From Hydrolagus colliei (taxonomy: Eukaryota): a stretch of 64,000 nt of DNA. Under the pieces are notes generated by a model. It was not told where the DNA came from. It worked only from the letters and a program-made list of their open reading frames with translations, and made no database searches. Each line of letters starts with the position of its first letter. Within the stretch, counting starts at the first letter, position 1. The DNA is taken from assembly GCA_035084275.1 (NCBI GenBank), contig CM068761.1, positions 8,370,001-8,434,000 on the forward strand, in the 5' to 3' direction. Positions 19,275 to 43,786 of the stretch are shown here, one piece after another. The position numbers and the translations under genes were made by a program.

Positions 19275-19282
19275 ATTTGCAT
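19275..19282 (+). promoter_or_regulatory. Ig octamer ATTTGCAT, cluster 1 promoter
   Basis: Exact octamer in light-chain orientation, 126 bp before leader ATG; present in all three V promoters. Confidence 0.9.
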
Positions 19283-19407: not shown

Positions 19408-19456
19408 ATGGGCGATTGGCTCCGATTTCTGGCCGCTTTGCTCCTGTGTCTACATG
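19408..19456 (+). CDS. IGL: Ig lambda/type II light chain cluster 1, leader exon (MGDWLRFLAALLLCLH)
   Basis: ATG, hydrophobic signal peptide, phase-1 donor G|GTAAG; acceptor CTCCAG at 19577-19582. Confidence 0.93.
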
Positions 19457-19582
19457 GTAAGCGCTGCGGAATCCGCACTGATCTCAATTAGCTTCACTTT
19501 GTACAGTTAGTTCTACAGTGTGACCTCTCTACAGTGTGACCTATCTACAGTGTGACTTATCTGTGACTTGTTATTTCTCCAG

Positions 19583-19912
19583 GAACAACCGCAGCTGTTA
19601 CCCTGACTCAGCCACCGTCCATCTCAACCTCCCCGGGAAACACCGTCAAGATCACCTGTACCATGTCCGGAGGCAGCATCGGCGGCTACGGCACGAGCTG
19701 GTACCAGCAGAAGCCTGGCAGCGCCCCTGTGTTTGTTTGGTATGGGAGCTCCACCAGAGGTCAGGGGATTCCTGATCGATTCACTGGTTCTGTGGACTCA
19801 ACGAGCAGCTCCATGCATTTAACCATCAGCGGTGTGCAGCCGGAGGACGTCGCCGATTACTACTGTTATGTGAATCGTGTCTTCGGTAAAGGGACCAAGC
19901 TGAGTTTGGGAA
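19583..19912 (+). CDS. IGL: Cluster 1 germline-joined VJ exon (CDR3 YVNRV)
   Basis: VTLTQPPS..KITC..WYQQKPG..GIPDRFTGS..EDVADYYC-YVNRV-FGKGTKL in one open frame, donor A|GTAAGT; no RSS between V and J. Confidence 0.95.
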
Positions 19913-20459
19913 GTAAGTGATGTTTCACATAGTACACTTTAAGTTTTAGTGGATCGATTTTTTAACGTTCAGTGTTTGTCTTCTTTTTTTTAGGTTTGTT
20001 TGAGTTTAAAGTTGCTTTGTGTTAGGTTTCGAAGTATTTTCAAAAATCAGATCATCTCTAAGTGAAATTGTAAATTTTTTTCAATGTTAAGTATTGCAAA
20101 GTTCACAAAACCAACGAACAATGAAGAAGAATTGATTTTATCCAAATATGGTTCCGGTGATAAGCTTTTATATTAAACTTTGTCGATTGAAAGCCTTAGA
20201 ATGCATGTCTACAGTGCAGAGACTCCAGTAAACAATGAGCTATAACAGGGAAAAGAAGAAAATATTTCATAGTTGCGATCCAAGATCTTCCTGATTAATT
20301 CGTTAATTTTTTTTGCATTCAAATTTTATTTGAGGTTTGTAAGTTTGCATTTGGTGATATTTTAAGAAACTTCAGCACAAGAAGATAAACAGCAGCCTTC
20401 ACTTGCTGGATCTCCTTGAGCTCTCAAGGGCAGTGCTGTTGACCAACTGGTGAATCGTC

Positions 20460-20800
20460 CGACTCTAAAAGGGAACAGAATAATAATTCTTGTATTTGAT
20501 GTACTGCCTTAGCGCATGGAAGTAAATTAGCTCTATATTCTGTGGATGAAATGTGGCAATCAATTGCGCACAGCAGTTTCCCACAAATAGTCATGGATTG
20601 AGTGACCAAATTATTATTTTTTGAATGGACTATTACTACCAAAAAGCGATCTGCCAATCGACCATGAACTAGGTTCCTGCTGCTAGGTAAATAAAGGCGT
20701 ATGGAATAAGGAAACTTTCCCAACATTTCAGCCTGTAAGGAATCGAATCCACGTCTCTCCCTTGCGAGACGAGTGCTCTAAGCACTGAGCTAAAGGACCC
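20460..20800 (-). mobile_element. tRNA-derived SINE in cluster 1 J-C intron
   Basis: Minus-strand tRNA-like head (GCTCAGTGCTTAGAGCAC..GATTCGATTCC) plus the body shared with other SINE copies in the window. Confidence 0.7.
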
Positions 20801-21082
20801 CATCATAATGTAATAACGTGGAAATGTTTCCTGTGGGTGATTGAATATGGTGAGGATTGAAACGTTCTAGAGACACTTTTCGACTGGCAATGAGAGCGAG
20901 TCACTGGCAACAACTGAGGGATGAGTTTCTCTTACCAACAATTCACGTTAGATTCTGATCTTTAAAGTAATTGAAGTGCTATGATCGGCTCACTGAGCAT
21001 CGCTGTTAACGCGGTTTGATACAGTGCAACAAACCCCAGTTTTGCCATTTCCATCTTTAAATATTAAATATTTTACTTCCAG

Positions 21083-21126
21083 ACCCTCGCGGCCCTTCGG
21101 TGACTGTCCTTCAGCCGTCACGAGAT
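21083..21126 (+). pseudogene. Truncated C-exon 5' fragment with intact splice acceptor inside cluster 1 J-C intron
   Basis: TTTTACTTCCAG|AC CCT CGC GGC CCT TCG GTG ACT GTC CTT CAG CCG TCA CGA GAT = PRGPSVTVLQPSRD; compare C exons PRAPSVTVLPPSPD / PRGPSVTVLPPSPD. Confidence 0.9.
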
Positions 21127-22259
21127 GTACGCACCTTTTATTGCCAGCATTTATCTTCCGATTTCTAATTTTACAAACTTATTTGGTTCTCCCAATTCCG
21201 TGGTTGATGTCGCTAAGGGCAGCACCACTGGAGAGACTCAACAATATCATGGTTGGTCAGATGGGAATCATCGCTCATTAAAGACAAAGGTTGAGCGCCG
21301 GCTCAATCTGGTCAAAATACATTTTCTCCTTTGAAAATTAATTTGATTATTTCCCTCAGGCATCATATTAAAGGGATTCCGATTTGTGTGTTGTGTATTG
21401 TGATTTTGTATTGTGCGCTATTAGTTATGAATTAAAATCAGCAAATACGGTGCCAAATAAATTATTGTGAAATCGGAAGCTCCTCTCGGTAACAAATCAA
21501 AGATTGGATTCTGATTGTGCTCCTGAATTGTTTTTCAGTGCAGAGTGTTTGGTCAAAAGGAAAACATTTATTTTCTTCCCATTTTCAGGTTGTTACTCTC
21601 TATACAAACTCTATATAATTAATAATAATGTTTCATGAGCTTTCGATCAGCAGCTCCCGCCACATACTTCTTGTGACGCGATATTTAGTGTCTGGTGTTA
21701 TTTCTTATGATTGTAGTTATTAATTACATCAACACAGGAAAATTCGAACGCGTCTTCAGCACTGCAAAAAAACAGCATAACACCGTAATAAATGGTTCAT
21801 TTCAATACAGAACTGTTAGTGGGATACTGCTGTGCGCAATTGGCTGCCACGATCCACCCGAATATATACAGACAATTCACTTTACAGTATATTTGGGGAG
21901 CTTAGAGACGACTAGAAGACGTCAAGGGCACAAGACCAAATGGAACGATTCTTAATATTATTATTATTGTTGAGCTCTCAGCAGCAAAGTATTGATAGTA
22001 TAATAATGAACGGTGTGTGATGGTGTATGATGACCCCAACAGTCATTGTTCCCTTACAATGTTACACTTTGTCACCGTTGAAAAGTACCGTCTACAACTC
22101 TGTACAAGAAAATGTTTTAGCATTTACAGGAATGCGAAATACTGTATAGGATTATTTATTGGTCATCCTGGAGTTTTGTCCTGCTATTCAACAGACCGAT
22201 TGTATCTTAAAATGTTAAAAAACTGAATTTCAACTTTTTTATCCATATTTTTCTTCCAG

Positions 22260-22582
22260 ACGCACGGGCCCCTTCCGTGACTGTCCTGCGGCCGTCACCA
22301 GATCAAATCACAGCAAAGAGCAAGGCGACCCTGGTGTGTCTGGTGAATGATTTTATCCCGGGAGCTGTGGAGGTCAAGTGGACTGTGGATGGCAGTGCCA
22401 GAAATGAAGGTGTTGAAACGAGTGCGATCAAGCAGGAGGTGGACAACACGTACCGTGTGAGCAGTTATCTGACTCTGCCAGCCTCCGAGTGGGAGTCACA
22501 CGAGCTGTATTCCTGTCTGGTCACACACGAGACTCGGGAGACTCCGCTGGAAAAAACCATCGCCAGATCCAGTTGTATCTAA
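22260..22582 (+). CDS. IGL: Cluster 1 constant exon (C-lambda/type II)
   Basis: Acceptor TTCCAG, phase 1 in frame with VJ1; ATLVCLV..VEVKW..YRVSSYLTL..EW..YSCLVTH..SSCI*; AATAAA at 22638-22643. Confidence 0.95.
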
Positions 22583-25254
22583 ATCTGCAATTTGCAGTGC
22601 TGGCCGAATATATCTTTGGCAATCTGACTTCAATTATAATAAATGTGTTTGTGATCGTTTGGAAATCATGATCATTTTGTCAGGAATGCCCAACTTGGGA
22701 AACAAATTCGCTTTGTAAACACTTTCGGTAGATATCCCGACAGGAGTAAAGAAGCTCTTAGATGTTTTAAGTATTGTACTGAAACCCCAGCAATAAAAAA
22801 TCTCAGTTTGCCTGAATCGAATGCTTGCATTTTACAGTGTATTCATGCTGCAACGATGAAGCCCCTTGTACAACATTAGAGAAATAACAAATACCGCATC
22901 TTAGTAAAATGACTCTTTCATGGTTCTCTGTTCCGTGGCTCTTTTACTTCCATTCCTTCTCTTGATTTTATTCATTTTGTTTCGCGTATCTCAAGATTTA
23001 GTTTTATATGAATGTTTAGATTTTTTTTAGGTAAACACACACCAGCGTTTGTAGACTGTCATCCAATGGGAAAATACATATTTCGTCTAGAAATTGTAGA
23101 CGCAAGGGAACGTAAATACCTTGATGCCTCATGCTTCCCCAGCGGCCGGGCAGCAAGCCCGTAGTTAGTTTAGATACTCAAACGGTTGTATTTTAAAATG
23201 AAAAATTTATCGTGGAGAATTTTGAGCTAAAATAACTTCGGTCGTTATCCGGGAGCCGTTTCATGTCGTGTTTTGAAAGGGAAACAGGTTTCAAATTCAA
23301 CTGAAAATAAAGTGAATTTACTTTTAAGCATTTTAAGTAAATATTAAATGTTAAGCCATGAACCGTTAACACGCTAAGCAAAAGTGAAATGTCTGCCCCA
23401 ATAATGGTATACATCGACACTGGATTTGGGATCTATTTCACTGAGATGCTTTTGACACTAGCCCCTACTCCCTCACCTCTCAAGCTAACCAATGTCTACA
23501 GAACTACATAAATATATATATGACCATACACATAAGGCAATCATTATGCCAAGCTTTCATATTGCTTAAAGACGTGAAAAGATATTGAAAAGATATATGT
23601 CCATCAGCCAACCAAGTACACATGAAACGAGTTAATGTGCCATTCCCCCAGTTACTGCACCAACCCCCCATCCACCCACCCCCAGTATATCCCAAGCCGC
23701 CAAACCTGCTGTTGAGAAACCAGCTTCCTCTTCGCAGGATTTTATGGAGTTTTTAAACAACTGCGGGTGTCATTGCAGTTTGTTTCAATCGTTTGTTGCA
23801 ACCTTTAAATCGATGGGCATTACACCATGTATTGTTGTTGTATATTTTCAGATCAAAATTGAAACAAATAATACTAATAATAATCATTGCATTTGGTATA
23901 AAACAATATATTATTGAAATTGAACTATGATGAAAGATAACTTTTAACATAGTTCAATTTCAATAATATATTGTTTTATACCAAATGCAGACAATAACAT
24001 ATCGGCCATGTCCCAGTGGCAGTAGGTAATGACGTAATAGAATAGTTTATTTTAAAAACTTTAATAAACTTCTAAAATCGTGAGCGTACGAATCTGGTAT
24101 ACAATTCAACCATTGAATAATACAATATTGAAGTATGAGTTGGGAGAAATTACCAGTAAGAATAGTACAATTGAATGTGTCAATAAGACCAATGACTGTC
24201 GAAACATTCAATACAATCGACAGAAAGCGGAGTGTTTTCTACATTCACAAGATATAGTCTGCTGTTCACTCAATCTGAGAATTTGCATCTATTCGTGGTT
24301 ATGAATGGTTATCAGAACCAACCAGGTCGGACATCCACGTTGACGCATTCTGAATCATGCCCTAATTTGTGAGTCAAAACTGCAAGTGTTGATGGTTCTT
24401 TATTTGGGAGGGAGATTCAAAAAAGTTACTTTGGCTGTTCTTCAGCAACGTTTTATATTTTAGTTTAATGGCCACCATGCCCGTAGTCCACTGAGAATAC
24501 ATTTTCATACGGCATGAAGTGTTGGTTTTGGATAACGATATTTAGAAATTCGCTTTAACGATCAAAACCAACCAACATAATACGTTTATGTATTTATCAA
24601 ATTTCTTGCTTGAACATCATTGCAAAGACTTCAGCTGATGGCAGCCATGTGAACTAAGACTGCCTCATCGTCCAACAAAGTCTGCAATCGCAGAGAAGAT
24701 TTGTTCTGGTCAGTCGGGATTTATAACCATTACAGTAACCCATCAATATATTTATAATGATCAATATAATAGGGAGAATTCACCAGTACAGACCGCCAGA
24801 ATGGTGATCTGTTACACACCATCTATTATCATAAAGATACCAAACTGGAATGTACAAGTAGTAGAATTCATGTGGCTATCCAAAGTGATTACAAGAAAGA
24901 AATTATGAACTCAGGTAGATCAGCAAATATATCGATCTGCAAATTTAATGCGGGTAATATGTAGCAGCAATTACTCTATGTAAAGTCATGTTGATGCAAG
25001 TTGTTGTTGTTGCTTTTCATCAATGTGACGACCAAATTTTGCAGTTTTATGATTCATAGTATTGTCGCTCTTCTTGTTTATACGAGAAATAAAAGAACCG
25101 CTTCCGTTATCTTCCTGAATATTTGAGTAGAAATTCCACGTGCATCTATTGAACTACAGAAAGTGGTTCTCGAAGTTAAATATGAATTGATCAGGTTGAC
25201 AATTTATGCAAACTTTAGAATGCTACATTAATAGAGTATATTTCGTATCTTATA

Positions 25255-25599
25255 ATAATGATATTAATCCTTGTTTTTAATATAGCGCTTTTCACATCTC
25301 ATCGACGTCCCAAAGTGCGTCACAGAATATACTGTAAAGTGAATTGACTGTATATTTGTGGGCGAAACGCGGCAGCCAATTGCGCACAGCAGCATCCCAC
25401 AAACAGTCGTGGATTGAAATGACCAATTTTATTATTGTGTTTTTTTTTAGGGATTATTATTAGGCGTGTGGACTCTGTGGAGTAAGGAAACTTGCCCAAG
25501 GTTTCGCCCTGACCTTCCTAGGTTCGACCATAGGTCTCCCCAGCATGGTCTCCTCAGCTTGCAAGATAAATGCTCTAACCACTGAGCCACAGGAGCTCC
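25255..25599 (-). mobile_element. Near-complete tRNA-derived SINE with conserved core and L2-type 3' tail (DeuSINE-like)
   Basis: tRNA head GGAGCTCCTGTGGCTCAGTGGTTAGAGC, core GCTGTGCGCAATTGGCTGCCGCGTTTC, tail GTGAAAAGCGCTATA; the same core recurs many times in the window. Confidence 0.7.
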
Positions 25600-26907
25600 A
25601 CATCTAGTATTTCTTGTACCCACCTTGTATTTCGATCCAAATCTTCTCACATTTTGACAGATGAGATATAGACAGAATCAGGGCTAGGAGCTGAAGAATC
25701 GTATTAAATACACAGCTTTTAATGTTTCATCAGAAAAAGCAGCCGCTGCAATTCATTGTAGCACTGATCTGGCTGTGATTCACACAGGGGCGACTCCCGA
25801 CTGTTTTAAAGGGAACAAACTCGAAAAAATGTGTGGACAACCAGTGTGCAGATTTTATTTTGTATTTTGTTTTGAATTGGTATCATAACAAATATATTTA
25901 TCAATATATACGTTTTCAAAAATCTTACACGTATCTTATTTCCTACCACGACTGTCTCCAGGTAAATCCTTTCGATCGAATAAGAAATAACTACCAAAAA
26001 GTCAAAACAAACCCAAATATGTCTATCTGTGTGTGCGGGGGATAGGTAATAGCAAATGACAATCGCTCTTAAAAATATCAGATGTAATAACATGAAGTAA
26101 CCATCTTGTATTTGTGCCAGGTTGAATGGTAATTTCCCTGGGACTGGAATGGAATCCTGAGGCTCCTCACTCTCCCCCTCTTTCCATTTCCCTCACACCA
26201 CTTACCTTATTGTGGAAAGTATTAGCTCCACGTGGGCGACAGTCAAGGCATGGCCACGGGATTTGCCATTTGTGGCGTTGCGGTGGCGATGCCTTGACTG
26301 TAGAGGCCAAACACTGTATGTGATAACCCCCTGTCTGTTGCTGTTCCCCAGGCTGGCTGATCAAGAGAGAGGTCGCTGTATTCATTGTTTATAACTTTGC
26401 CTGAAAGAAATGTTCGTTCATCATCGGGGAATGTCAATCGCGCTATTATTCTGCTGTTAAACATATCACATCTGCAGTGAGGCATGGTGCAGTAAAGGGA
26501 ACCCTAACGTGAGGGCAGGGCTGGTATCTGCCGCAAGGTGATTTGGAGAATTTATTTCAGAAATCGAGAAACCGTATAAACAATGTGGGGAACCCTGTCA
26601 CCGGCTGTGAAGTGTGACTTGCACGGCAGGGTTTGTATCAGTTCAGGTGTGGCTTGTCAGTGTGTAAACTGTAACTGAATGAAAAGATGAAACTTTCCCA
26701 ACTACAAATTATCTTTCAACGGAACAAGCTTCACCAGCGCATGATCCTCTTTGAACCTGGGCAAGCGAATCTTGCAGGAATCATACTCTGTAAAACCGTG
26801 AACTATATGAATATTTAAAAGAATAAGGCTTATCCACGATATTGTAAATAATTGAAGTTTGTGCAATGTAAACAAAATGCTCTTTTTTTATACTGGCATC
26901 ATTTTCT

Positions 26908-27185
26908 GATATCCTGTAGCTCAGTGTTTAGAATTACAAGCGAGGGACCTGGATTCGATTCCAGGCAGGGTGAAACTTTGGGCAAGTTTCCTTACTCCAC
27001 ACGCCTGATAAAAATCGCTAAAAAAAATTCATGACTGTTTGCTGGACACTGCTTTGCGCAATTGGCTGCAGCGTTTTGTCCACATATATACAGTCAATTA
27101 ACTTTACAGGATAATCCGTGAAGCGCTATGAGACGCCGAGAAGACGTTAATCGCCATATCAAATAGAGGATTATTATTTATTATT
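26908..27185 (+). mobile_element. tRNA-derived SINE upstream of cluster 2 promoter (paralogue at ~42696-42975)
   Basis: Head CCTGTAGCTCAG..GGATTCGATTCC, same core and tail; same position upstream of cluster 3. Confidence 0.7.
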
Positions 27186-27344
27186 TTTATCATTATTTAA
27201 TCAAACTCTCTAGGGTGAAACATTATGCAGTATTATCATGAAATACCTTTTGAAATCCGGGCGGTAAAATGGTTTAAATCTGCATGATGTTCCATCTGCT
27301 GTTCAGAACAAGGATTCCAATTGAACGATGGGAGCCGGAGGACA

Positions 27345-27352
27345 ATTTGCAT
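27345..27352 (+). promoter_or_regulatory. Ig octamer ATTTGCAT, cluster 2 promoter
   Basis: Exact octamer; E-box CACCTG at 27380-27385. Confidence 0.9.
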
Positions 27353-27476
27353 AATTTATGAATTCAACTGGACTTGCATCACCTGATGGTTCTTAAGGAG
27401 AAGTTTACAATCGAGCAGTAAAGTGGCTTTTGTCTGTGAATCGCTAATTTCTCTGATGTTCATCAAACTGTTCACA

Positions 27477-27525
27477 ATGGGCGATTGGCTCCGAGTTCTG
27501 GCCGCTTTGCTCCTGTGTCTGCATG
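27477..27525 (+). CDS. IGL: Cluster 2 leader exon (MGDWLRVLAALLLCLH)
   Basis: ATG, signal peptide, G|GTAAG donor, 98-bp intron. Confidence 0.93.
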
Positions 27526-27623
27526 GTAAGCGCTGCGGAATCCGCCCTGATCTCAATTACCTTCACTCTGTACAGTGTGACCTGTCTACAGTGTGACTTA
27601 TCTGTGACTTGTTATTTCTCCAG

Positions 27624-27953
27624 GAACAACCGCAGCTGTTACCCTGACTCAGCCACCGTCCATCTCAACCTCCCCGGGAAACACCGTCAAGATCACCTGT
27701 ACCATGTCCGGAGGCAGATTCAATACCTACACGAGCTGGTACCAGCAGAAGCCTGGCAGCGCCCCTGTGCTGCTTATCTATCAGGGCTCAAAACGATTTC
27801 AGGGGATTCCTGATCGATTCACTGGTTCTGTGGACTTATCGAACATGCATTTAACCATCAGCGGTGTGCAGCCGGAGGACGCCGCGGATTATTACTGTTT
27901 TTCCGGGTATGACACTTTCATCTTTGGTAAAGGGACCAATCTGAGTTTGAAAA
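27624..27953 (+). CDS. IGL: Cluster 2 germline-joined VJ exon (CDR3 FSGYDTFI)
   Basis: Open frame with both Cys, WYQQ, YYC, FGKG; donor A|GTAAGT; no RSS. Confidence 0.95.
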
Positions 27954-29673
27954 GTAAGTGATCTAGTTTCGACTTTCGATGATTATTGTGATCTAATTCT
28001 CCTACAGTTTCAACAATAATAAAAACAACAAAAAGCGAACAACATTGCTCTTGTATAGAGCCTTTCACGTGAGGAGGACGTCCAAATATAATTGCATGTT
28101 TGTCTGTATTCGATATTGTTTCACACGCTTTCTGTGATAGTCGCATCTGGTTTCCTAATGATAAACTTTTTATGTGGAAATCAGAAATTTTAAAGAATCA
28201 AACACGCGAAACCTGATCTGAACTGAAATTCTATGAAAAATTTCGACGAATATTACAGCCAACTAACAATGGTAAAAAGGTGGAGAAATGAATTAAATTA
28301 GCCAAGCGGAGTTAACCGTGGTGATATTTATATTTAACAGTCTGAAGGACTGAAGATCTCAGATTCACTGAAGCACCGCTTAGAGATCCTGGTAAAGAAT
28401 GAGCTACACCAGGGAAATGAGTTAACACTTCACACCTGAGATTGAAGTTAAATCTCTTTGCGCCAGATTATTTAATTTCTATGTTTACTTGTTAACCTCT
28501 TTCCCCAGTTTGTCAGCACGAAGTGATATTTAAAAGAATCTCCATCATAAGGAGATCAACAGCATCTTTCCATCTGGTGACTGTCGCTGGGGTCTAATGG
28601 ACCGATTGGTGAGCGGTTCTATCTCAGAGGGAACCGGATTCCATGAAAATAGTGTTCGTCCGTGACTAACTGATCATTTTGAAAATTTAAACTTCTTTGA
28701 GAGTGAGGGGATTGTGTAATTGATGATAGAGAAGAACTGTAGGGGAGTTTGTTCGCAACATCATTATGGTTACAAATCGAATCCATTATTTTCAGAATAA
28801 TTCAAATGTTACAGTCTGCTCCGTGTAATTGCCAACAATCTTTGCATTTTAACATTTTTCGATTCCAGAGTTCTATTCGGATTTCCTCAAACGTTTTATT
28901 TTCTCCCCCTCTATCCCCATTAGAATACATTTGTATTTTTACCATGTATTACGCGCATTTATCTTCAGATTTCTAATTTTATAAACGTACTTTACAATCT
29001 CCCAGTTCCGTGTTTTATGTCACTAAGGGCAGCACCACTGGAGATACTCAATAATATCATGGTTTTCACCACAGGTTGGTGCTGTTGGTCAGATGGGAAT
29101 CATCGATCATTAAAGACAGAGGCTGAGCGCCGGCTCAATCTGGTCAAAATACATTTTCTCTCTTGAAAATTAACTTTATCACTTCCCTCAGGCATCATAT
29201 TAAAGGGATTCCGATTTGTGTGTTGTGTATTGTGATTTGTGTATTGTGCGCTATTAATTATGAATTAAAATCAGCAAATGCGGTGCCAAATAAATTATCG
29301 TGAAATCGGAAGCCCCTCTCTATAACAAATCAAACATTGGGTTCTGATTTTGCTCCTGAATTGTTTTTCAGTGCAGAGTGTTTGGTCAAAAGGAAAACAT
29401 TTATTTTCTTCCTATTTTCAGGTTGTTACTCTCTATACAAACTCTATATTTGAGACGCCTAGAAAACGTCAAGAGCACTATATCAAATGCAAGGATTATT
29501 ATCATTATTATTGTTGAGCTCTCAGCATCAAACTATTGATAGTATAAAATGAATGGTGTGTGATGGTGTACGATGACCCCAACACTCATTGTTCCCTTTA
29601 CATTGCTGCACTTCGATTGTAACTTAAGATGTTAAAAATGAATTTCAACTTTTTTTCCATAATTTTCTAACAG

Positions 29674-29996
29674 AGCCGCGAGGTCCTTCAGTGACTGTCC
29701 TTCCGCCGTCACCAGATCAAATCACAGCAAAGAGCAAGGCGACCCTGGTGTGTCTGGTGAATGATTTTACCCCGGGAGCTGTGGAGGTCAAGTGGACTGT
29801 GGATGGCAGCGCCAGAAGTGAAGGTGTTGAAACGAGTGCGATCAAGCAGGAGGTGGACAACACGTACAGTGTGAGCAGTTATCTGACTCTGCCAGCCTCC
29901 GAGTGGGAGTCACACGAGCTGTATTCCTGTCTGGTCACACACGAGACTCGGGGGACTCAGCTCGAAAGAACCATCGCCAGATCTAGTTGTATCTAA
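29674..29996 (+). CDS. IGL: Cluster 2 constant exon
   Basis: Acceptor AACAG, phase 1; intact C1-set domain ending SSCI*; AATAAA at 30114-30119 and 30311-30316. Confidence 0.95.
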
Positions 29997-31952
29997 ATTA
30001 GGAACATACAGAGCTCGTTGAATGTAAGTTTGGCAATCTACATTAATAATAAGAATTGTGTTAATACTTGTTTGGAATTTAAAGTAGTTTTGCCAGGAAT
30101 GCCCAAATTGAGAAATAAATTCGCTTAAATACCTCCGGTAAATTTGTAACAGAAGGAAAGAAGCTCTTAGATTTTTAAGTAGAGTGTTACAATACGGCAA
30201 CAATAATTTGTCTGTTTGCTGGAATTGAATGGTTGTACTTTACAGTGTGTTCACGCTGCAATAATGAAGCCACCCGTGTAACATTACAGATATAACAAAT
30301 ACTACAGTTTAATAAAATGACTCTTTCATTGCCCTTTGTGCCGTGGCTATTTTTCTTCCATTTCTTCTCTTGGTTTCAGTATTCTTTTGTCTAAACCACG
30401 GAGTTGATTTTATTCATTAAACATACACGCAATACTTATGTGTGTTTGAAATTGATCGCGCAGCATTTTGGAAACATTTTAATCTTGGTGGTTAATTGGG
30501 AACTTTTTCATGTGGTTGTTAAAAACAGCCAACTTTCAAAGTAAATTCAACGTCAATTAAAATTAAAGTGAATTTAAAATATCGCACAATATTCAGTGTT
30601 AAGTCATGATTGTTGTTACAGGCTGAGCACGTGTGAAATGCTCTCCCTCTGTACATCCACCTTGGGTTTGGAAGATAATTCATTGAGATACTTTTGCCCC
30701 CTGCCTCTCCAGCCCGCCAATCTCTATAGAACTAAATCAAAGTATTACTCAAGTACTTCACTAATCATTATGCTGAGGTTTTGTGTTGCCAAAAGGAGTG
30801 ACAACCTATTGAAAGGTTATATGACCATCAGATGCAAATGAAACATCAAAATGTACCCGCTCCGAAGAGCTCATTGTGGAGTTACTCCCCTCCCCACCCC
30901 ATGGCCAAGCCTGCGGTTGAGTAACGTACCAACTTCCGCATTGCAGCCTTTTAACACCTGCAAGTGTCTCTGCAGTTTCCTTCAGTCGTTTAAGCTGCTG
31001 TCAATTCTATTCAATATTTTCATTTTATTGCAAAACATTAAATCGGTACGATATAACCATTAAATAGAACTGTTCCTTGTTGGTAGATATCAAAACAAGT
31101 TTAATCATTGAAATTGAACTATGGTCAGACGAAGCTGGACAACGACTTGTTTGGAATAGACCAATCGCAGCTGGTGCTGATGTCATCGAGATGTTCACAT
31201 AACTCAACTGGAATGAATCCCAAGCTCTGACTAATGTAATAATATAATAGCATATATTTATGGTTGAATTGGGTGAATTGATAGTTTGGAAGAGAATAGT
31301 ATAATTGATTGAACCAATAAAAACAATAAAATGAATGATACACTGAGCAGTGTATCATTCATTTTAGTGAGCGGACCATGTTCTCCATTCACATAATATA
31401 GTTTGCTGCTCTCCTAATCTAAGAATTTGCATTTTTTTATGTTTGCGTTTATGTTTGTGAATGGTTATCACAACCATCCAGGTCCGAGATCCACGTTTAC
31501 ACATTCTGACTCATGCGCTAATTTGTGAGTAAAAACTGTAAGTGTTGATTGTAGTTCATGGAGGAGGAGGATTCAAAAATGTTATCTTGGTCGTCGTTCA
31601 CCACCACTTTATATTCTATTGGTGGGCCTGAAAACACATATTGATACGGCATAAACTTGTGTTTAAATATAACGATACTTAGGAAATCGCTTTAACATAG
31701 TGGATGTAAATCCCTTTAAGTAATTATCAGTACTGGATCTGCCCACGTAACGTTGGGGATGTGATCTTAAAAAAGAACAAAACCTAAATTACCATAGGCC
31801 CCCATACTATCAACAGGTGTTACGTTCCTTCACTACATTTCTGGTTTAAATTTTCTTACACTAACCTTAACTAAAGACCAAAAACAACACCATTAGTATT
31901 GAAAATATAAATGCAATAAAAGTTTAAAGTTTAATAAATGTATAAAGAAGAT

Positions 31953-34900: not shown

Positions 34901-35050
34901 GGAGGTGGAACAAGTGAGGGTGAAGTGGAGGTTGATGTCGTTGAGGATGATGAGATGAAACGTGACATCCGATCGGAGGAGGCGCAGAGGTAAGCTAGGA
35001 GTTGGAGAAGTCAGAGATGAAGGTTTGGGAGAGTCAGTGCTGGAGGTGAT
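31953..35050 (-). mobile_element. Long degenerate L2 LINE (endonuclease to 3' tail) interrupted by a solo LTR
   Basis: EN-like LIILNDINLHF..THVHGHPFNLVIT near 34750-34950, RT fragments, tail at ~31953-32010; paralogous copies at 48113-49040 and 59652-62230. Confidence 0.8.
32650..33391. mobile_element. Solo LTR (742 bp)
   Basis: Begins TGTAG, ends CACAACA; 4-bp TSD CATA (32646-32649, 33392-33395); absent from the paralogous L2 at ~60575. Confidence 0.75.
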
Positions 35051-35890
35051 TAAATGTAGAAATAAGATAAAAAGGCAATTAAGAGAACACTGACAGGAGA
35101 TGGTTGATGTGGTCATTGCAAACACACTCTGGGGATCCGCACAAGAGGTAGGTAGGTAATCCCGCCTCTTTATCCGCCCCCTCCCACTCACTGATCACAT
35201 CCACCATCCCTAGTATGTGTTCCCTTAATAGTATTTATTATCTTATTGATATATTTACTAAACAACTAATATAAAATTTAGTCAGCTAATATCACTTCGA
35301 TTAATCCAATTGCTAATTATTGTTTCTAACTATTTATTAATTCGTCAATGACAAATAATTGAAACGACGAATATTGAGACATATAGCGAGGAGTGCCAGT
35401 ATATACGTGAGGAAAACAAGGTAGCACATTACTCACAGGTGTACTCCACAAACCGCTGGATTTAAATGACCAATATATTATTGTTTTTTTGAGGGATTGT
35501 TAGGTATGTGGTGTCAGGAAATTTGCCCAATGTTTCACCCTTCGTGGAATTGAGCCCAATTCTCTCTCTTTTAAGGCACTTGCTGTATCCACTGAGCTCC
35601 TGGACTGCTCACTTGAAGGGTTTATTATAATGATGACAATAGGAGGCGGCACCATTTCATGCAGATAGATGGATAATCTGTCTGTTATAAACCACATATT
35701 AGAATAAAAAACCCCAAAATACATAGTAAATGTAGCAAATTTTCATACACAATATGCCTAATCCATCAAAAGAGGTAATCATAAATTGGTAACTTCAATG
35801 TGCGACTGTTTGTAGGTCACTGCTGATATGTTTCGCCCACATTTATTCACTTTTTGTTTGAGGGACCTTGTGTAAAGCGCTTTGAGACGT

Positions 35891-37982
35891 CTAGAATCAT
35901 AGAATCATAGAATCATAGAATTTTACGGCACAAAAGGAGGCCATTCGGCCCATCTAGTCTGTGCCGGCTCTTTGAAAAGAGCGATTCAATCCCATTGCCC
36001 TGCCCGCTCCCCATAGCCTAATAGACCCGTTTTTCCTAAATAAAGATCTAATTCCCTTTTAAAAGTTGTTATCGAATCAGCCTCCACCACCTTTTCAGGC
36101 AATGCATTCCAGATTCGAACAACTCGCTGAGTGAAAAAATTTCTCCTCAGCTCCCCTCTACTGCGCCTTGAAACTATTTTAAATCTGTGACCACGAGTCA
36201 CAGATTCACCCACGAGTGGAAATAGTTTTTCTCTATTTGCCCTGTCGAAACCCCTCATGATCTTATAAACCTCTATTAGGTCTCCCCTCAATCTTCTCTG
36301 CTCCAGAGATAATAACCCTAGCCTATCTAGCCTCTCCTCATAGCTGAAGTCCCTTAATCCTGGCACCATCCTAGTAAATCTTCGTTGTACCCTTTCCAAT
36401 GCCTTCACATCCTTTCTGTAGTGTGGTGACCAGAATTGAACACAGTATTCCAGCTGAGGCTCACCAAAGTCCTATAGAGGTTAGTCAGCACTTCCTGACT
36501 TTTGTACTCTATACCCCTATTTATAAAGCCTAGTATCCCATATGCCTTCTTAACAGCCTTGTCTACCTGTCCTGCCACCTTCAACGAGTCACTAACACAA
36601 ATCCCCAGGTCTCTCTGTTCCTTCACACCATTTAAAATTGTACTATCTAGCCTATATTGCCTCCCTTCATTTCTTCTCCCAAAATGCATCACCTCACACT
36701 TCTCTGCATTAAACTTCATCTGCCATGTGTCTGCCCACTTTACCAATTTGTCTATATCCTCTTGCAGATGGCTACTATCCTCCTCACTGTTTACTATTCT
36801 CCCTAACTTAGTGTCATCTGCAAACTTGGAAACTGTACTCCGTACACCCAAGTCCAGATCATTGATGTAGATTACAAACAGCAATGGTCCCAAAACCGAT
36901 CCCTGTGGCACACCACTGCTCACTTCCCTCCAATCTGAAAAACAGCCGCTCACTACAACTCTCTGCTTTCTGTCTCGCAGCCAGTTGTGGATCCACGCTG
37001 CCACTGTCCCTTTTACGCCATGGGCCTTTAATTTCATAATAAGTCTCTCATGTGGCACTTTGTCAAATGCCTTTTGAAAGTCCATGTAAACTACATCAAC
37101 TGCGCTACCATTATCCACCCATTCCGTTACCTCATCAAAAAATTCTATCAGATTTGTAAGGCAAGATTTGCCTTTAACAAATCCATGTTGACTGTCCTTT
37201 ATTAGCCTATATCTTTCTAATTGAAGATCTACCTTGTCCCTGATTATGGACTCTAGAAGTTTGCCCACTACCGACGTTAGACTGACTGGTCTGTAGTTAC
37301 CAGGCTTGTCCTTCTGCCCCTTTTTATACAAGGGAGTAACATTAGCTATCCTCCAGTCCTCTGGCACGACCCCTGTGTCCAAGGAAGATTGAAAGATCGT
37401 GGCCAGAGTCCCTGCTATTTGCTCCCGTGCCTCACTTAGTAACCTAGGGTGCATCCCATCCGGACCAGGTGACTTATCCACCTTGAGCGACGTCAACCTT
37501 TTTAGCACTTCCTCTCTGGTTATAATTATTCTATCCATTTCTCCTACCCTCTCCTCTAATACCATGGCATTGGCTGTATCATTTTCTTTTGTGAAGACAG
37601 AGGCGAAGTACTCATTCAGTACATCAGCCATGCCCTCTGCCTCCACAATGAGATTTCCTCCTAGGTCCCTAATTGGCCCCACCCTCTCCTTGACCAACCT
37701 TTTACTCTTAATATGTTGGTAAAAAAACCTTAGGGTTCCCCTTAATCTTACTCGCTAATTGTTTTTCATGCAGTCTCTTTGCCCCTCTAACTTCCTTTTT
37801 TAGTTCTATCCTACACTTCCTATATTCTGCTTGGTTCCCTTCTGAATTTTGAGCCTGACACTTATCATAAGCCTCTTTTTTTTGTTTGATTTTGGCCCCG
37901 ATTTCCTTAGTCATCCAGGGAGGTTTGGATGCCTTACATTTCACCTTTGTGGGGATGCTTTTGACCTGTGCCTGAACTAGAA
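35891..37982 (-). mobile_element. Young CR1 LINE, 5'-truncated (RT domain)
   Basis: 430-aa ORF 36405-37697 with GVPQGSVLGP and KFADD; (TAGAATCA)n tail 35891-35920; CTAGAA duplicated at both ends; empty site at 63282-63287. Confidence 0.97.
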
Positions 37983-39935
37983 GATGAAAGGATTGGTATT
38001 ATAACTTAGGATTTGTTTTAGTCATCCATACATATTTCTAAAGGAATAGAAACACGTTCTTGTGTTTTGTTTTGGCTTGATGCGTCTTGTGTGCAATCAT
38101 CTGCAATTATCTGGAAGTATTTGCATTGACAGCAATATTCTAAGAGAAATAAAATAATCCATGTTTGTGACATACGTGAATGTTTGAATGGAAATGATAC
38201 CTGTGCCTACTGAAATACAGACAGAGGTTCTCATAGTTCAGTATGAATTTAACAGGGTGACAATTTCTTCAAACTTTAAAATACAACATTAATCGGGTAT
38301 TTTTAGTCACACCTTGGATTTCTACCCAAGCTTCTGATACATCAGATGTGGGCAGATTCAGGTGAGGAACACTCAATCTGTCGAGGGCGCTATCTCACAA
38401 TAAATAAAAACGGTACCTCACTCTCACTGAGGCAACAATTTAGAATGAGTGTCCGTTTGAATTTCACAGCTTATATGAAATCTACTCAGCTACTTGTAGT
38501 GTGTGTTTTTGAAGCCAAACACATTGGTTGTTTTGCAGCAGCAATATCACTCAACAAATGAACAACAAAAATTGTAAATAATCTTAGGTATAGACAAATG
38601 CAAGAACACATTGCATTTATGCAGCATGTTGCCAAAACTCGTCATCCGTGGTATGATTCGATTGTGAAACGACTTTAGATGCGATTTCGAAGAGGGAAGG
38701 CAGTACAAGGCAACGTTTTTTCAAGACAGTTCTCCCAAGGAATATGGCCAAAACATGTTGAAGGCCTTTTGCGATGAATGCAAGAATGATTGTCTCTGCA
38801 GCGTGAGTGGAGAGACAGTGGCAGTGTTGGTCAATGCAGTGGAAGTGCAGGAATACAGAACTGTGGGTGGCATCCATATCGGGATAAGGAAAGATGAGCA
38901 TCCACGAGAATACTGACGCTTTGTGGAAGTTGTGGCCGGTGAAAAGCGAATATGTTAATAGTGTCGTTGTCAGTTCTTTGGGTTAGGAACTGCAGACAGG
39001 AGCCAAATAAGGCGGCCTTCACTTTGTCAACTTGAAACTGGAAAAAATTAGCCATTATTCAGGGCTTGATCCGTGAAAATGGCAGGAAACAAATTGAGAA
39101 ATATGGAGGAACAGCTTGAATACAGGTTTATTTGTAAACAACAACAAAATTACATTTCTATAGCGCCTTTCACACTGGCAGGACGTCCCAAGCCGCTGAA
39201 CTATCAGGTGTGTACCTGAGCAGGGGAGCAGGGGTCGGTGTAGGGGGAAGGAGAGTAAGAGAATTGACGGTATATTTGTGGGTGAAACACGGCAACCAAA
39301 CTGCGCGCAGCAGTGTCCCACAAATAGTCGTGGGAGTGGGGTTAGGGGAGAAAGGGGGACAAGAGCATAAGGGGGAAAGGGAGGAAAAGTTGAGGTGAGA
39401 TACAGTCGGGAGGAAAAGTGAAGGAGAAAGGGGGTAAGGTGGAGAGGGAGGTAAAGTGGAGGGGTTAAAATCTGGGAGAAATGGGAGAAAGGTGGTTAAA
39501 GGGAAACAGGGAAGGAAGGGAGAAAAGGGGGAGAGTGAAAGCATGGGGGAAAACGGAGCAGAAGGAAGAAAGAGGGAGAAGAGGGGGGAGGGAAAAGAGG
39601 GAAGAAAGGAGGGAAGATAGGGAGGGGAATGAAAGGGAAGATAGGGAGGGGAATGAAAGGGAAGTGGACAGAGATGGTAGGGGTGAAAGAGCGAGAGGAA
39701 GGACAGGGTGGGGGGGGGGGGGGTGTGGGGGGTGGAAGGTGGAGTGAAGAGAGAAGAGGAATGAGAAGCAATGAAAGAGTGAAGTAAATAGGGGATTCGA
39801 GATAGGCAAAGAAGGGAGGTAAAAAGGGAGGAGAGAAAGGGGGAAAGGGAGCGAGGGAAGAAAATGGGGGAAAGGTTAAGGTGCAAAAGGGGGGTATTAA
39901 TCAATGCCAACAAACATAATAACAATAACAATATT

Positions 39936-40082
39936 GAAGTCCTTGAGCTCAGCACTCCTTGTCCTCACTGTCTGCCTGGACGAACTGTTGGAGCTGGAAC
40001 TGGGTGAAGTGGGAGATGAGATCCAACAGTGATGAGTTGAACACTCCTGCTCGGCCTCCAGCCGCTGCTGTTCTTCGGCCAT
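39936..40082 (-). pseudogene. RUNDC1-like coding fragment, copy 1
   Basis: QRLEAEQ (frameshift) FNSSLLDLISHFTQFQLQQFVQADSEDKE..ELKDF; resembles recalled RUNDC1 N-terminal LLALSSHFAQVQFRL..ELEDF. Confidence 0.55.
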
Positions 40083-40149
40083 GATGGTCATGGTCAGAGA
40101 TTGGGCCTAGTGTGGTGACACTAGTGTGGCCACAAAACTGACCGGCTCT

Positions 40150-40480
40150 TCAGCTGGTGTACTTGGTGATGGCCTTGATGCTCTCGGACATGGCATGTTT
40201 GGCAGCTCACCCAGCAGCAGCAGCCTGACCGCCATCTGGATCTACCACCATGTGATAGTCTGCCACGTGCTGTACTGGATCAGGTAATAGGCCTCGCAGG
40301 CGATCCACTCAACGATGTCGTTGACGAACGAGTTCACCACATTCATGGCCGACGATGAGATGCCCGTGTTCTTGTGGACCTGCTTCAGCACCTTGTACAT
40401 GTATGAGGTGTAACTCTGTGTCCTGCGCGTGCGGCATCTAACCCAGCTGCTCGTCCGCCACCGTCGCATTTTTCAGGGAT
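40150..40480 (-). pseudogene. H2B: Histone H2B pseudogene, copy 1
   Basis: [42 protein letters not shown].., then IQMAVRLLLLGEL..AITKYTS* after frameshift. Confidence 0.9.
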
Positions 40481-43122
40481 CACCTGAAAGTATTCAGTGG
40501 CTTGTGATGTCTTTCCAATGTGAAAGGTGCTCCATAAATGTAATTTTGTTGTTGTTGTTCAGTCCCATATTTCTATGTTCTGCTAATAAGTTTGATCAGT
40601 TTAATTAAAATAATCATAACTATGATAATGATAACTGGATACCTGGGATAAATCATCTGCTCCAATGACTTTAAACAAAATTCAATTATGACCACATGTC
40701 ACAATCCACATGAAGAAGAAAACACTTTGTATCCTATCCAGCGATGACACAATTAAAATGAGCATTGACTTCAATAACCATTATGGCTGAGAAACTGTAA
40801 GATATTAAGATGCACAAATTGGCTTACACATTTACCTAAATAATATACGCCAGTGAATCATCACTTGAAACGAAAAGTCATCATTTAATGAAAGGTACTT
40901 TCTCAAAGGTATTAATATATATTTCATTGTTAACACACTACAAGTGTGAGTTTTTTTATTGAAGGTCATTTGGGATTTCTATGCATGAGCAAATCATTTG
41001 ATCTTGACCTCTCAAAAATGTGCATTGAATCATTGCATGGTTCCATACACGCGAGTTTACAAATTTGAAGACTTGAGTAGAACACTTTCTGAAATGCACT
41101 GGTGTGTATGTCCTACACTGGTGGAGGTGCCATCCCTTGGATTACACTTGAAACCGAATACCATTTTCTTGTTAATTTGGAAGTTAAGGATCCCATGTCA
41201 CAATGCAAATGGGGAACAAAGCATTTGGTGTCCTGGCCAACAATTGCCCCAAATAAAACTATCATTCATTTCAAGGCTGTTTGTGAAACATCACCATACA
41301 CTGATTTGCTTCTACATTTTTCCAAACAGCATGCACAGTGTATTCTGCGAAGCATCGTGATAGTTCCTCTTGGTATGAAACGTGGTTTGTCAAAAGTGTT
41401 ATCTATTTATTTCATTTAACAGTATATGTATTATGGAAGTGTTGAGTTTAAAAATGAATGCAGTGTTGGGTTTTCTACGCATGTGCAAGTTACTTTGACA
41501 TATCCTAAATGTGCATGGGATCAGCGCATGGACAGAATTGAATACACGTGAGTGGGAACTCTGAGGGAAATCTTCACTTGAGGACTGTTCGTTTAGTGGG
41601 TTGTGTAACAGTAATCTGCTTTTACGCTTCCCGTTCCAGTCTATATCACAATTTCTATGTCAATGACATGTCCAGAAGATGGGCCGTATGTGTTTGTGTA
41701 TTGATGCCATTACATCTCTGTTCCCTGGAAGGAAACGTAGATTAACAGCCGTTAATGTTTTTATCAGAAAAAGCAATGGCTGTAAATTAATTCACTGTGG
41801 CACTGATCTGGCTGTGATTCACACAGGATGACTCCAGTCTCTGTTAAAGGGAACGTAACCGAAAAAATGTGTGGACAACCTGTGTGTGGATTTTATTTGG
41901 TATTTTGTTTTGAATTGGTGTCATAACAAATATATTAAAAAATATATACATGTTTTCAAAAATCTTAAACCCATCTTTTTTCGTACAACGACTGTCTACA
42001 GGTAAATCACTTCGATCGAATAAGAAATAACTATGAAAAAGTTAAAACAAACCCAAATATGTCTATATGTGTGTGCGAGGGACGGGTAATAGCAAATGAC
42101 AGTCGCCTCTATCGATGAATGTGTTGCTGTTCCCCAGGCTGTCTGATCAAGAGAGCCGGTACTGTATTCATTGTATATAACTTTGCCTGAAAGAAACGTT
42201 CCTTTATCATCGGGGAACGTGAATCGCGCTATCATTCTGCTGTTAAATATATTACATCTGCAGTGAGGCACAGTGCAGTAAAGGGAATCCTAGCGTGAGG
42301 GCAGGGCTGGTACCTGCCAGAAGGTGAATGGGAAAAAAGTATTTCAGAAATAGAAAAATCGTATTTGTGAGGTTCCCTGTCACCGGCTGTGAAGTGTGAC
42401 TTGCACGGCAGGGTCTGTATCAGTTCAAGTGTGGCTTGTCAGTGTGTAAACTGTAACTGAATGAAAAGATGAAACTTTCCCAACTACAAATTATCTTTCA
42501 TCGGAACAAGCTTCACAAGCGAATAAATCTCTTTGTACCTGGGCAAGCGAATCTTGCAGGATTCACACACTGCAAAGCGGTGAACTACATGAATATTTAA
42601 TAGAATAAGACCACGACACTGTCAATAATTGAAGTTTGTGCTGTTTAAAAAAACTCTGTTTCACACTGCAATTGAAAACTAGCTTCATTTTCTGATGTCT
42701 TGTAGGTCAGTTTAGAGCACTTGCCTTACAATCGAGTGACCTGGGTTTGATTCGTCAGGGCGAAACCTTGGGTAAGTTTCCTTACCCCACACGCACGATA
42801 ATAATCCCTAAAACACCCCAATAATAAATTGGTCATTTCACGACTGTTTGTTGGAAACAACTTTGCGTAATTGGCTGCCCCTTTCGCTCACATATACACA
42901 GTATATTCTGTGATGCGCTATCGGACGTCTAGAAGACGTGGAAAGCACCATTTTAAATGAAGGATTATTATTACTTTATCAAGGTCTTCAGGTTGACACA
43001 TTAGTCAATGTTACCATGAACCAAATTTTGAAATCCGGGCTGTAAATTGGTTCAAATTTGCAAGATGCTACATCTGCTGTTCAGAACAAGGATTCCTATT
43101 GGACGATGGGAGCCGGAGGAGA

Positions 43123-43130
43123 ATTTGCAT
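43123..43130 (+). promoter_or_regulatory. Ig octamer ATTTGCAT, cluster 3 promoter
   Basis: Exact octamer; E-box CACCTG at 43158-43163. Confidence 0.9.
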
Positions 43131-43254
43131 AAATTGTGAATTCAACTGGACTTGCATCACCTGATGGTTCTTAAGGAGAAGTTTACAATCGAGCAGTAAA
43201 GTGGCTTTTGTCTGTGAATCACTAATTTCTCTGATGTTCATCAATCTGTTCACA

Positions 43255-43303
43255 ATGGGCGATTGGCTCCGAATTCTGGCCGGTTTGCTCCTGTGTCTGC
43301 ATG
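43255..43303 (+). CDS. IGL: Cluster 3 leader exon (MGDWLRILAGLLLCLH)
   Basis: ATG, signal peptide, G|GTAAG donor, 126-bp intron ending CTCTAG. Confidence 0.93.
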
Positions 43304-43429
43304 GTAAGCGCAGCGGAATCCGCCCTGATCTCAATTACCTTCACTTTGTACAGTTAGTTCTACAGTGTGACCTATCTACAGTGTGACCTATCTACAGTGT
43401 GACTTATCTGTGACTTGTTATTTCTCTAG

Positions 43430-43786
43430 GAACAACCGCAGCTGTTACTCTGTCTCAGCCACCGTCCATCTCAAACTCTCCGGGAAACACCGTCAAGATC
43501 ACCTGTACCATGTCCGGAGGCAGCATCGGCAGCTACTACACGAGCTGGTACCAGCAGAAGCCTGGCAGCGCCCCTGTGTTTGTTTGGTATGAGTACAGGA
43601 GTAGCTCCTTCAGAGGTCATGGGATTCCTGGTCGATTCACTGGTTCTGTGGACTCATCGAGCAGCGCCATGCATTTAACCATCAGCGGTGTGCAGCCGGA
43701 GGACGCCGCCGATTACTACTGTGGTGTAATCGGCGGCACCAGCTATCCCTTCATCTTTGGTAAAGGGACCAAGCTGATTTTGAAAA
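43430..43786 (+). CDS. IGL: Cluster 3 germline-joined VJ exon (CDR3 GVIGGTSYPFI)
   Basis: Open frame, conserved Cys/Trp/Cys and FGKG; donor A|GTAAGT; no RSS. Confidence 0.95.

Follow-up and report, generated by a model that had tools for sequence, protein, structure and literature searches.

The 64,000-nucleotide stretch of the Hydrolagus colliei genome analysed here (contig CM068761.1, positions 8,370,001 to 8,434,000; hereafter the window) contains three intact immunoglobulin light-chain units, each consisting of a leader exon, an exon in which the variable (V) and joining (J) segments are fused, and a constant (C) exon, arranged head to tail on the forward strand. They are referred to as clusters 1 to 3, and a further unit that has only a C exon as unit 4 (Table 1). 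When their exons are modelled with canonical GT/AG splice sites, clusters 1 and 2 each encode an intact protein of 233 amino acids and cluster 3 one of 242, all with V-set and C1-set domains (Pfam), and in each cluster V and J lie in frame within one open exon. Between the Cys and the FGKG motif, the third complementarity-determining regions (CDR3s) read YVNRV, FSGYDTFI and GVIGGTSYPFI respectively (5, 8 and 11 amino acids). A sequence-only reading of this DNA had proposed three tandem VJ genes of the chondrichthyan type II (lambda) isotype, with V running straight into J, these CDR3 lengths and a spacing of 8-16 kb; the exon models bear out the gene structures, protein and domain matches the isotype, and the ATG-to-ATG distances (8.1 kb from cluster 1 to cluster 2, 15.8 kb from cluster 2 to cluster 3) the spacing. 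Comparison of one unit with the window by BLAST returned three V copies and no more, and the 21-nucleotide start of J, TTCATCTTTGGTAAAGGGACC, is present exactly twice, at 27917 and 43750, against a chance expectation of 0.01. Each of the three clusters has the putative promoter octamer ATTTGCAT 132-133 bp upstream of its ATG.

Table 1. Features of the lambda light-chain units and of the DNA between them (window coordinates)
Feature	Position	Strand	Remarks
Cluster 1 promoter octamer ATTTGCAT	19275..19282	+	133 bp 5' of ATG; conserved in three-way alignment
Cluster 1 leader exon	19408..19456	+	Exon model, GT donor; three-way alignment
Cluster 1 fused VJ exon	19583..19912	+	CDR3 19867-19881, TAT GTG AAT CGT GTC (YVNRV)
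Cluster 1 C-lambda exon (C1-set)	22260..22582	+	Exon model, domain match
Conserved element 3' of C1, candidate enhancer	24160..24567	+	Octamer at 24281
Cluster 2 promoter octamer	27345..27352	+	132 bp 5' of ATG
Cluster 2 leader exon	27477..27525	+	Exon model
Cluster 2 fused VJ exon	27624..27953	+	CDR3 27899-27922 (FSGYDTFI); 2-codon deletion in DE loop of framework region 3
Cluster 2 C-lambda exon	29674..29996	+	Exon model
Conserved element 3' of C2	31300..31700	+	Octamer at 31425
Fragment of a young LINE (reverse transcriptase), in the cluster 2-3 interval	35898..37979	-	Self-comparison
Cluster 3 promoter octamer	43123..43130	+	132 bp 5' of ATG
Cluster 3 leader exon	43255..43303	+	Exon model
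Cluster 3 fused VJ exon	43430..43786	+	CDR3 43723-43755 (GVIGGTSYPFI); 3-codon insertion in CDR2
Cluster 3 C-lambda exon	45816..46138	+	Contains an additional Cys codon, TGC (45875-45877)
Conserved element 3' of C3	47440..47835	+	Octamer at 47562
Unit 4 deletion junction	55549..55552	+	About 2.1 kb gone, equivalent to cluster 3 41868-43959 (promoter, leader, VJ)
Unit 4 orphan C-lambda exon, intact open reading frame	57392..57714	+	96.6-97.8% identical to C1-C3
Conserved element 3' of C4	58995..59390	+	Octamer degenerate: ATTCGCAT

The best protein matches are a light chain of H. colliei (83% identity) and light chains of Callorhinchus milii (about 79%), with E values from 1e-125 to 1e-110; further matches include a sandbar shark lambda chain and dozens of shark and ray proteins named 'immunoglobulin lambda-1 light chain-like'. 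The C-terminal residues of the C regions in the window differ from those of the H. colliei and Callorhinchus light chains with which they were compared; in overall C-region identity they stand closer to Hydrolagus than to Callorhinchus. By these matches, the window is identified as a piece of a holocephalan immunoglobulin lambda (type II/NS3) multi-cluster locus. That the lambda clusters of cartilaginous fish are joined in the germline is textbook knowledge, and the locus itself is of this already well-known kind. Reviews describe lambda as germline-joined in every cartilaginous fish studied, with no split gene reported (PMC5192425, PMC4279169).

The layout of the window is that of Callorhinchus loci L001, L002 and L005-L008. 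The Callorhinchus array on MU249839.1 likewise consists of leader-VJ-C units with V and J fused, placed head to tail at intervals of 8-12 kb, with the same promoter region and conserved 3' element, the same kinds of CDR3 class (5 and 12/13 amino acids) and orphan C relics. Protein identity between the window and these holocephalan clusters, represented by H. colliei cDNAs and the Callorhinchus array, is 79-83%. The window differs from both in the CDR2 insertion and the extra Cys of cluster 3, and the 8-amino-acid CDR3 of cluster 2 has no exact counterpart among the sampled holocephalan clusters. Elasmobranch 'lambda-1-like' genes have 55-70% protein identity to the window and resemble it in that the diversity between clusters is concentrated in the CDRs. 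A sandbar shark lambda genomic clone, as Hohman et al. (1993) are cited in PMC5192425, also has a germline-fused VJ.

Split lambda V genes would carry a recombination signal sequence (RSS) of the form CACAGTG-23-ACAAAAACC, and split J segments a preceding 12-RSS. The window and eight related loci were scanned for such signals, allowing at most one mismatch in the heptamer, a spacer of 12 or 23 (+/-1) and at most two mismatches in the nonamer. Across all 64 kb of the window there is one weak match, at 25027 on the minus strand, where about 0.9 would be expected from shuffled sequence, and it adjoins no V or J, in agreement with the earlier statement that the joins lack RSSs. In the 123 kb Callorhinchus array and the Pristis and Heterodontus loci there is again no RSS adjoining a V or J, only chance-level matches inside repeats; nor do these loci or the window contain a closely related split lambda paralogue with RSSs, whole genomes not having been searched. 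The Callorhinchus array has 11 lambda V genes, and in every one of them, even a decayed pseudogene and a gene disrupted by an insertion, V is joined to J; this also holds for the short-CDR3 clusters of Pristis and Heterodontus. A divergent V-like match in Callorhinchus (L008 3452-3688) was considered as a split V and rejected, being a decayed pseudogene that is itself joined; over L008 3452-3760 this pseudogene has stop codons, has lost its Cys and has its 5' end cut by a repeat, with V joined to J through a 12-amino-acid-type CDR3. The leader intron contains a 16-bp tandem repeat, TCTACAGTGTGACCTA, in 3.2 copies in clusters 1 (19512-19562) and 3 (43359-43409) and about two in cluster 2 (near 27571-27600). 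The heptamer-like TACAGTG within it was rejected as an RSS relic, having no nonamer and the wrong position, and the repeat is probably unrelated to RSSs.

The junction DNA of clusters 2 and 3 had been described as not alignable, and codon alignment of their CDR3s does give only 42% identity with a 3-codon indel, the first codon after the Cys already differing (TAT in cluster 1, TTT in cluster 2, GGT in cluster 3). The corresponding values are 43% with a 3-codon indel for CDR2 and 33% with a 2-codon indel for the DE loop of framework region (FR) 3, as against 94.7% for FR1 and 93.3% for FR4, both without indels. Among the three clusters, the CDRs show a much greater proportion of non-synonymous differences (pN) than the frameworks do. 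CDR2 and the DE loop, which V-J joining cannot touch, align no better than CDR3, and the V-J junction between clusters 2 and 3 is not uniquely divergent. Recent joining by RAG would be expected to leave differences confined to the V-J joint; this is not observed in the window, where CDR1, CDR2 and the DE loop are hit equally.

The relationships between the clusters change along the unit. In the 5' flank, 30 informative sites group clusters 2 and 3, compared with 10 for clusters 1 and 2 and two for clusters 1 and 3. From the leader to FR1 the most frequent pattern is that uniting clusters 1 and 2 (seven sites, with two for clusters 1 and 3 and three for clusters 2 and 3), including all four informative sites of FR1 itself. 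From CDR1 to the 5' part of CDR3 clusters 1 and 3 are grouped (26 sites, with four for each other pair), and in J plus the intron clusters 2 and 3 once more (25 sites, with five for each other pair). This heterogeneity is highly significant (chi-square 67.4, p ~1e-12; permutation p <= 2e-4), the pattern switching at FR1/CDR1 and at CDR3/J. Clusters 1 and 2 do not differ at any of 133 consecutive nucleotides (19544-19676) that end at the first base of CDR1, and clusters 1 and 3 are 100% identical in FR2 and 96% in FR3. Clusters 2 and 3 are 94% identical in the 420 nucleotides preceding V and in the 700 nucleotides with which the J-C intron begins, and 81-89% identical over kilobases further out. 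The V exon is hence a mosaic of three histories, which on this sequence pattern points to gene conversion. Clusters 2 and 3 had been regarded as whole-unit duplicates, and they do have flanks (81-94% identity) and the start of J in common, but owing to this mosaic they are not simple whole-unit copies.

Several comparisons also bear on the age of the units. In non-coding DNA, copies within the window have diverged from each other by 6-19% and from Callorhinchus by 22-35% (65-78% identity), and the J-C intron of cluster 1 is largely unalignable to those of clusters 2 and 3. In a tree of the conserved 3' element, the path lengths from unit 1 are 0.22-0.29 to the copies in Callorhinchus but 0.35-0.39 to units 2-4, the split being supported at 100/100, and the distance of 0.16 between clusters 2 and 3 is more than half that between unit 1 and Callorhinchus. 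The trees of the 3' element, the 5' flank and the J-C intron disagree with the similarities of the frameworks. On these distances, clusters 2 and 3 are judged to be old duplicates, not recent ones, and cluster 1 an old paralogue. Gene conversion is indicated by old paralogues sharing frameworks of 96-100% identity.

Framework similarity and CDR3 class are visibly decoupled in Callorhinchus, the lambda clusters of which are denoted by Cm labels (Cm2917 and Cm2897, for example, lie at ~2.917 and ~2.897 Mb of MU249839.1). Cm3057 and Cm2991 differ by 2.2% in their frameworks, yet have CDR3s of 9 and 12 amino acids; Cm3070 and Cm2962 differ by 13.8%, yet have the 12-amino-acid class in common, their CDR3s being 19% different without a gap. 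Over about 800 bp, from the promoter through leader, intron and V to J and the next 100 bp of intron, Cm2917 and Cm2897 (L002 1500-2300 and 22050-22850, separated by 20 kb) are 100% identical save for 10 positions that all fall in CDR3; their outer flanks differ by 5-20%. These differences lie in two patches around a common central 15 nucleotides, with one change of 4 contiguous nucleotides, and since the patches flank a shared core, a single V-J joint cannot have produced them. In the VJ exons of Cm2978 and Cm2962, all six differences are in CDR1, CDR2 or CDR3 and none is in the 225 framework nucleotides, the neighbouring non-coding DNA differing by about 1%. Among database matches, in a database clustered at 90% identity, close same-species pairs with near-identical V and different CDR3 are few.

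The junctions themselves have relatives in another genus. The CDR3 of cluster 3 is encoded by GGT GTA ATC GGC GGC ACC AGC TAT CCC TTC ATC and that of Cm2897 by GGT GCG GAA TTA AGC ACC AGT CCG TAT CCC TTC CTG; GGC ACC AGC TAT CCC TTC of the former matches AGC ACC AGT [CCG] TAT CCC TTC of the latter at 16 of 18 nucleotides, with one codon missing. The 3' half of the cluster 2 CDR3, TAT GAC ACT TTC ATC, resembles CAT GAC ATC TTC CTG in Cm2917 (10 of 15 nucleotides, plus a common extra codon), and the 2-codon DE-loop deletion of cluster 2 is common to Cm2917 and Cm2897. This pair is also the nearest to clusters 2 and 3 in the J-C intron tree (0.42-0.43, against at least 0.54 for others). Both 3' junction variants, TAT CCC TTC and YAT GAC AYY TTC, are present in both holocephalan genera, and from their sequences seem to predate the split between the two.

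Over a wider sample of 104 chondrichthyan lambdas, CDR3s fall into length classes of 5, 8, 9, 11 and 12 amino acids. On a V tree of these sequences calculated without CDR3, length class requires 34 changes, compared with 56.6 in shuffles (none of 200 as low). The 5-amino-acid class, [YF][AV]x[RK][TI]-FGKG, is represented by eight sequences in seven genera of sharks and rays, and YVNRV of cluster 1 fits it; the sandbar shark protein P0056, for instance, has YAART-FGKGTKLNLG where cluster 1 has YVNRV-FGKGTKLSLG. The genera are Heterodontus, Carcharhinus, Cetorhinus, Pristiophorus, Heptranchias, Pristis and Narcine, and the members P0034, P0056, P0058, P0061, P0066, P0069, P0089 and P0101, with genomic loci at L003 10419-10466 and L004 10477-10524. 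Five of these 5-amino-acid elasmobranch sequences, from both sharks and rays, group as one clade (Shimodaira-Hasegawa-like approximate likelihood ratio test, 91), whereas the V of cluster 1 clusters with other holocephalan V sequences; an 11-amino-acid clade has a support of 99. At the nucleotide level, the cluster 1 CDR3 matches the Callorhinchus 5-amino-acid CDR3 at 6 of 15 positions, which is uninformative, and those of Pristis and Heterodontus at 7 and 9 of 15, which is suggestive only. The V of cluster 1 is 91% identical to that of the H. colliei cDNA P0001, with the same CDR2 (GSSTRGQ), and the CDR3 of the cDNA is 12 amino acids long, as opposed to 5. As these two share V and not CDR3, V bodies like that of cluster 1 are attached to different CDR3-J modules.

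The explanation that we consider the most probable for these observations is that old, already joined CDR3-J modules reside in units in which gene conversion has homogenised the frameworks and flanks. Each cluster would be a self-contained transcription unit, with an octamer promoter, leader, fused VJ, an intron of about 2.3 kb, a C exon and a conserved 3' element, able to encode a light chain without RAG, and the fused state would have been inherited rather than remade after the local duplications. The 11-amino-acid junction of cluster 3 may then be the Callorhinchus 12-amino-acid junction containing AGC ACC AGT CCG TAT CCC TTC, minus one codon. That of cluster 2 is most simply regarded as the same class as these two after an internal deletion that kept TAT GAC ACT TTC ATC, and that of cluster 1 would be a member of the short class of sharks and rays. 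Leader, frameworks, J, C and nearby non-coding DNA would have been repeatedly homogenised, by gene conversion or unequal exchange, with the antigen-contact loops (CDR1, CDR2, the DE loop and CDR3) remaining different either through selection or because conversion tracts tend to end at the most divergent patches. Because their surroundings would be homogenised and their contact loops not, old paralogues would mimic recent whole-unit duplicates with a foreign junction. The anatomy, the lack of RSSs, the mosaic, the junction matches between genera and the decoupling of framework distance from CDR3 class can be seen in the sequences themselves. That gene conversion was the homogeniser and selection the force keeping the CDRs distinct is something that we infer from these patterns, as is the direction of any individual conversion.

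The sequence-only reading had posed a choice between joining that occurred independently after duplication and very fast divergence of already joined CDR3s. This dichotomy is not well supported, given a junction that is not special, a mosaic V exon, duplicates that appear old and junctions found across genera. The comparison that it had proposed, of flanks with V, J and junction, is answered in outline for the three window clusters and Callorhinchus: the segments give differing groupings, which speaks for old modules with homogenisation as the likelier history, makes independent joining quite improbable and leaves fast divergence as a partial, though rather unlikely, alternative. Under that alternative, clusters 2 and 3, and possibly cluster 1, would derive from one joined gene by recent duplication, and the CDRs, chiefly CDR3, would have changed very quickly in the germline under diversifying selection, perhaps through multi-nucleotide or hypermutation-like changes, without ancient modules or gene conversion. 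The raised pN in the CDRs of the window, the six CDR-only differences between Cm2978 and Cm2962, and the 10 clustered CDR3 differences between Cm2917 and Cm2897, with their contiguous 4-nucleotide change and nothing else in about 800 bp, are all in keeping with such a process. It would not, however, account for cluster 1 grouping with cluster 2 in FR1, with cluster 3 from CDR1 to FR3 and with neither in the flanks, nor for the distance of the unit 1 3' element from those of units 2-4, which is as great as that to another genus, nor for both the TAT CCC TTC and YAT GAC AYY TTC variants occurring in both genera; and where Callorhinchus clusters have divergent frameworks, their CDR3s have not diverged further than these (19% versus 13.8%).

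Independent germline joining, in which RAG in germ cells joined each copy of a split ancestor (V-RSS ... RSS-J) after duplication, with differing trimming and N and P additions, has a precedent in the nurse shark NS4/kappa genes, where at least five such joinings occurred, the youngest 0-7 Myr ago (PMC2193156). The CDR3 length differences (5, 8 and 11 amino acids here, 12 versus 13 in Callorhinchus) also lie near the expected V-J boundary. Against this, the loci scanned contain no split lambda or RSS and the reviews report none (PMC5192425, PMC4279169), divergence begins at the first codon after the Cys and extends to loops beyond the reach of joining, the near-identical Callorhinchus pairs differ in two patches on either side of a shared CDR3 core, and the cluster 3 junction is common to another genus. 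The proposal that lambda descends from a primordial undivided V exon, never interrupted by a RAG transposon, would fit the lack of any known split lambda in cartilaginous fish (PMC5192425, PMC4279169), but the direction from split to joined has been demonstrated for NS4 (PMC2193156), and the genes in the window have an ordinary J/FR4 (FGKGTKL) and a lambda-isotype C region. For bony vertebrates, the known state of lambda is split, with RSSs. Together with the J/FR4 and the C region, this makes a split common ancestor the more parsimonious, and a lambda that was never split is regarded as highly improbable. It is highly improbable, too, that the joins are lymphocyte rearrangements captured in an assembly of lymphoid-rich tissue. 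A single contig has three joined clusters in succession, when a somatic clone would contribute only a few of the reads; the layout is the same in the assemblies of Callorhinchus, Pristis and Heterodontus; a decayed pseudogene is joined too; and Callorhinchus cDNAs agree with genome-annotated proteins in exact protein sequence (e.g. XP_042193496 and AFK10868.1).

A number of points weigh against the explanation by old modules and homogenisation. The CDR3 comparisons rest on 15-39 nucleotides each, and the sample consists of three clusters of this genome and 11 of Callorhinchus. The segment bounds of the mosaic test were set only once the data had been inspected. The links from cluster 2 to Cm2917 and from cluster 1 to the elasmobranch 5-amino-acid class are only suggestive at the sequence level, and the one-codon difference between cluster 3 and Callorhinchus lies at the expected V-J boundary, so that two independent joinings of similar ends could have produced it. 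All holocephalan V sequences form one clade in the V tree regardless of CDR3 class; this may be read as concerted evolution, but would equally fit duplication after speciation with convergence of CDR3 lengths. Finally, old modules do not explain why a conversion tract should have spared CDR3 alone in Cm2917 and Cm2897.

Two other light-chain families offer comparison. The nurse shark NS4 genes (kappa/type III; Lee et al. 2000, PMC2193156) resemble those of the window in having germline-joined VJs within a multi-cluster family, and raised the same question of one or several joinings, settled there by phylogeny. In NS4 this was possible through close split paralogues with RSSs. As the data compared here contain no split paralogue and the isotype is lambda, that defining comparison of split and joined genes cannot be made for the window. 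The skate type I genes (sigma-2; Anderson et al. 1995, PMC2192082) are like lambda in that a whole isotype is pre-joined in many clusters, without combinatorial or junctional diversity; they differ in isotype, and in that their joined state is lineage-specific. The horned shark homologue is split, but every species studied has joined lambda genes.

Other features of the window concern the C exons and the DNA between units. Unit 4 retains the J-C intron, C exon and 3' flank, but not the promoter, leader or VJ, and the joint of the deletion has the microhomology ATGTGGA. An orphan partial C exon resembling unit 4 is also found in Callorhinchus (L005 14866-15117). The extra TGC (Cys) of cluster 3 near the start of the C domain replaces AGC (Ser) in C1, C2 and C4, and this cysteine is probably unpaired. 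In all four units, the C exon is followed at a distance of 1.4-1.7 kb by the conserved element, some 400 bp long, which also has a TGA(A/C)TCA motif; being 72-82% identical to the Callorhinchus copies, above the level of the surrounding non-coding DNA, it is on sequence conservation a candidate 3' lambda enhancer. The DNA between clusters holds relics of long interspersed nuclear elements (LINEs) and long terminal repeat (LTR) elements. Two LINE fragments lying between clusters in opposite orientations (35898-37979, minus; 50674-52690, plus), with reverse transcriptase and endonuclease domains, are 96-98% identical to each other, which implies recent LINE activity, and the longer spacing between clusters 2 and 3 is partly due to the insertion of the first of them. 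Upstream of cluster 1 there is an integrase relic of an LTR element (12865-13860, minus).

The locus itself adds a clean tandem map to what is known of this isotype, and the differences in junction among its neighbouring joined clusters need no repeated activity of RAG in germ cells. The length classes could ultimately have originated through independent joinings in deep time, before the split between holocephalans and elasmobranchs. As a bolder and distinctly tentative proposal, lambda might be built from very old, trans-specific CDR3-J modules, shuffled onto homogenised V bodies by a germline conversion that regularly halts at CDR3 or has its repair directed away from it. The 5-amino-acid module may then extend from chimaera to sharks and rays, and the two 12/13-amino-acid variants across the two holocephalan genera, possibly with the help of a mutational or micro-conversion process targeted to CDR3; the clearest example would be the pair Cm2917 and Cm2897. 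If true, such modules would be a germline counterpart, on an evolutionary time scale, of combinatorial and junctional diversity. Confirmation across the genome would caution against dating germline joining from the similarity of flanks, and would indicate how an isotype without somatic V-J joining keeps diverse binding sites over hundreds of millions of years.

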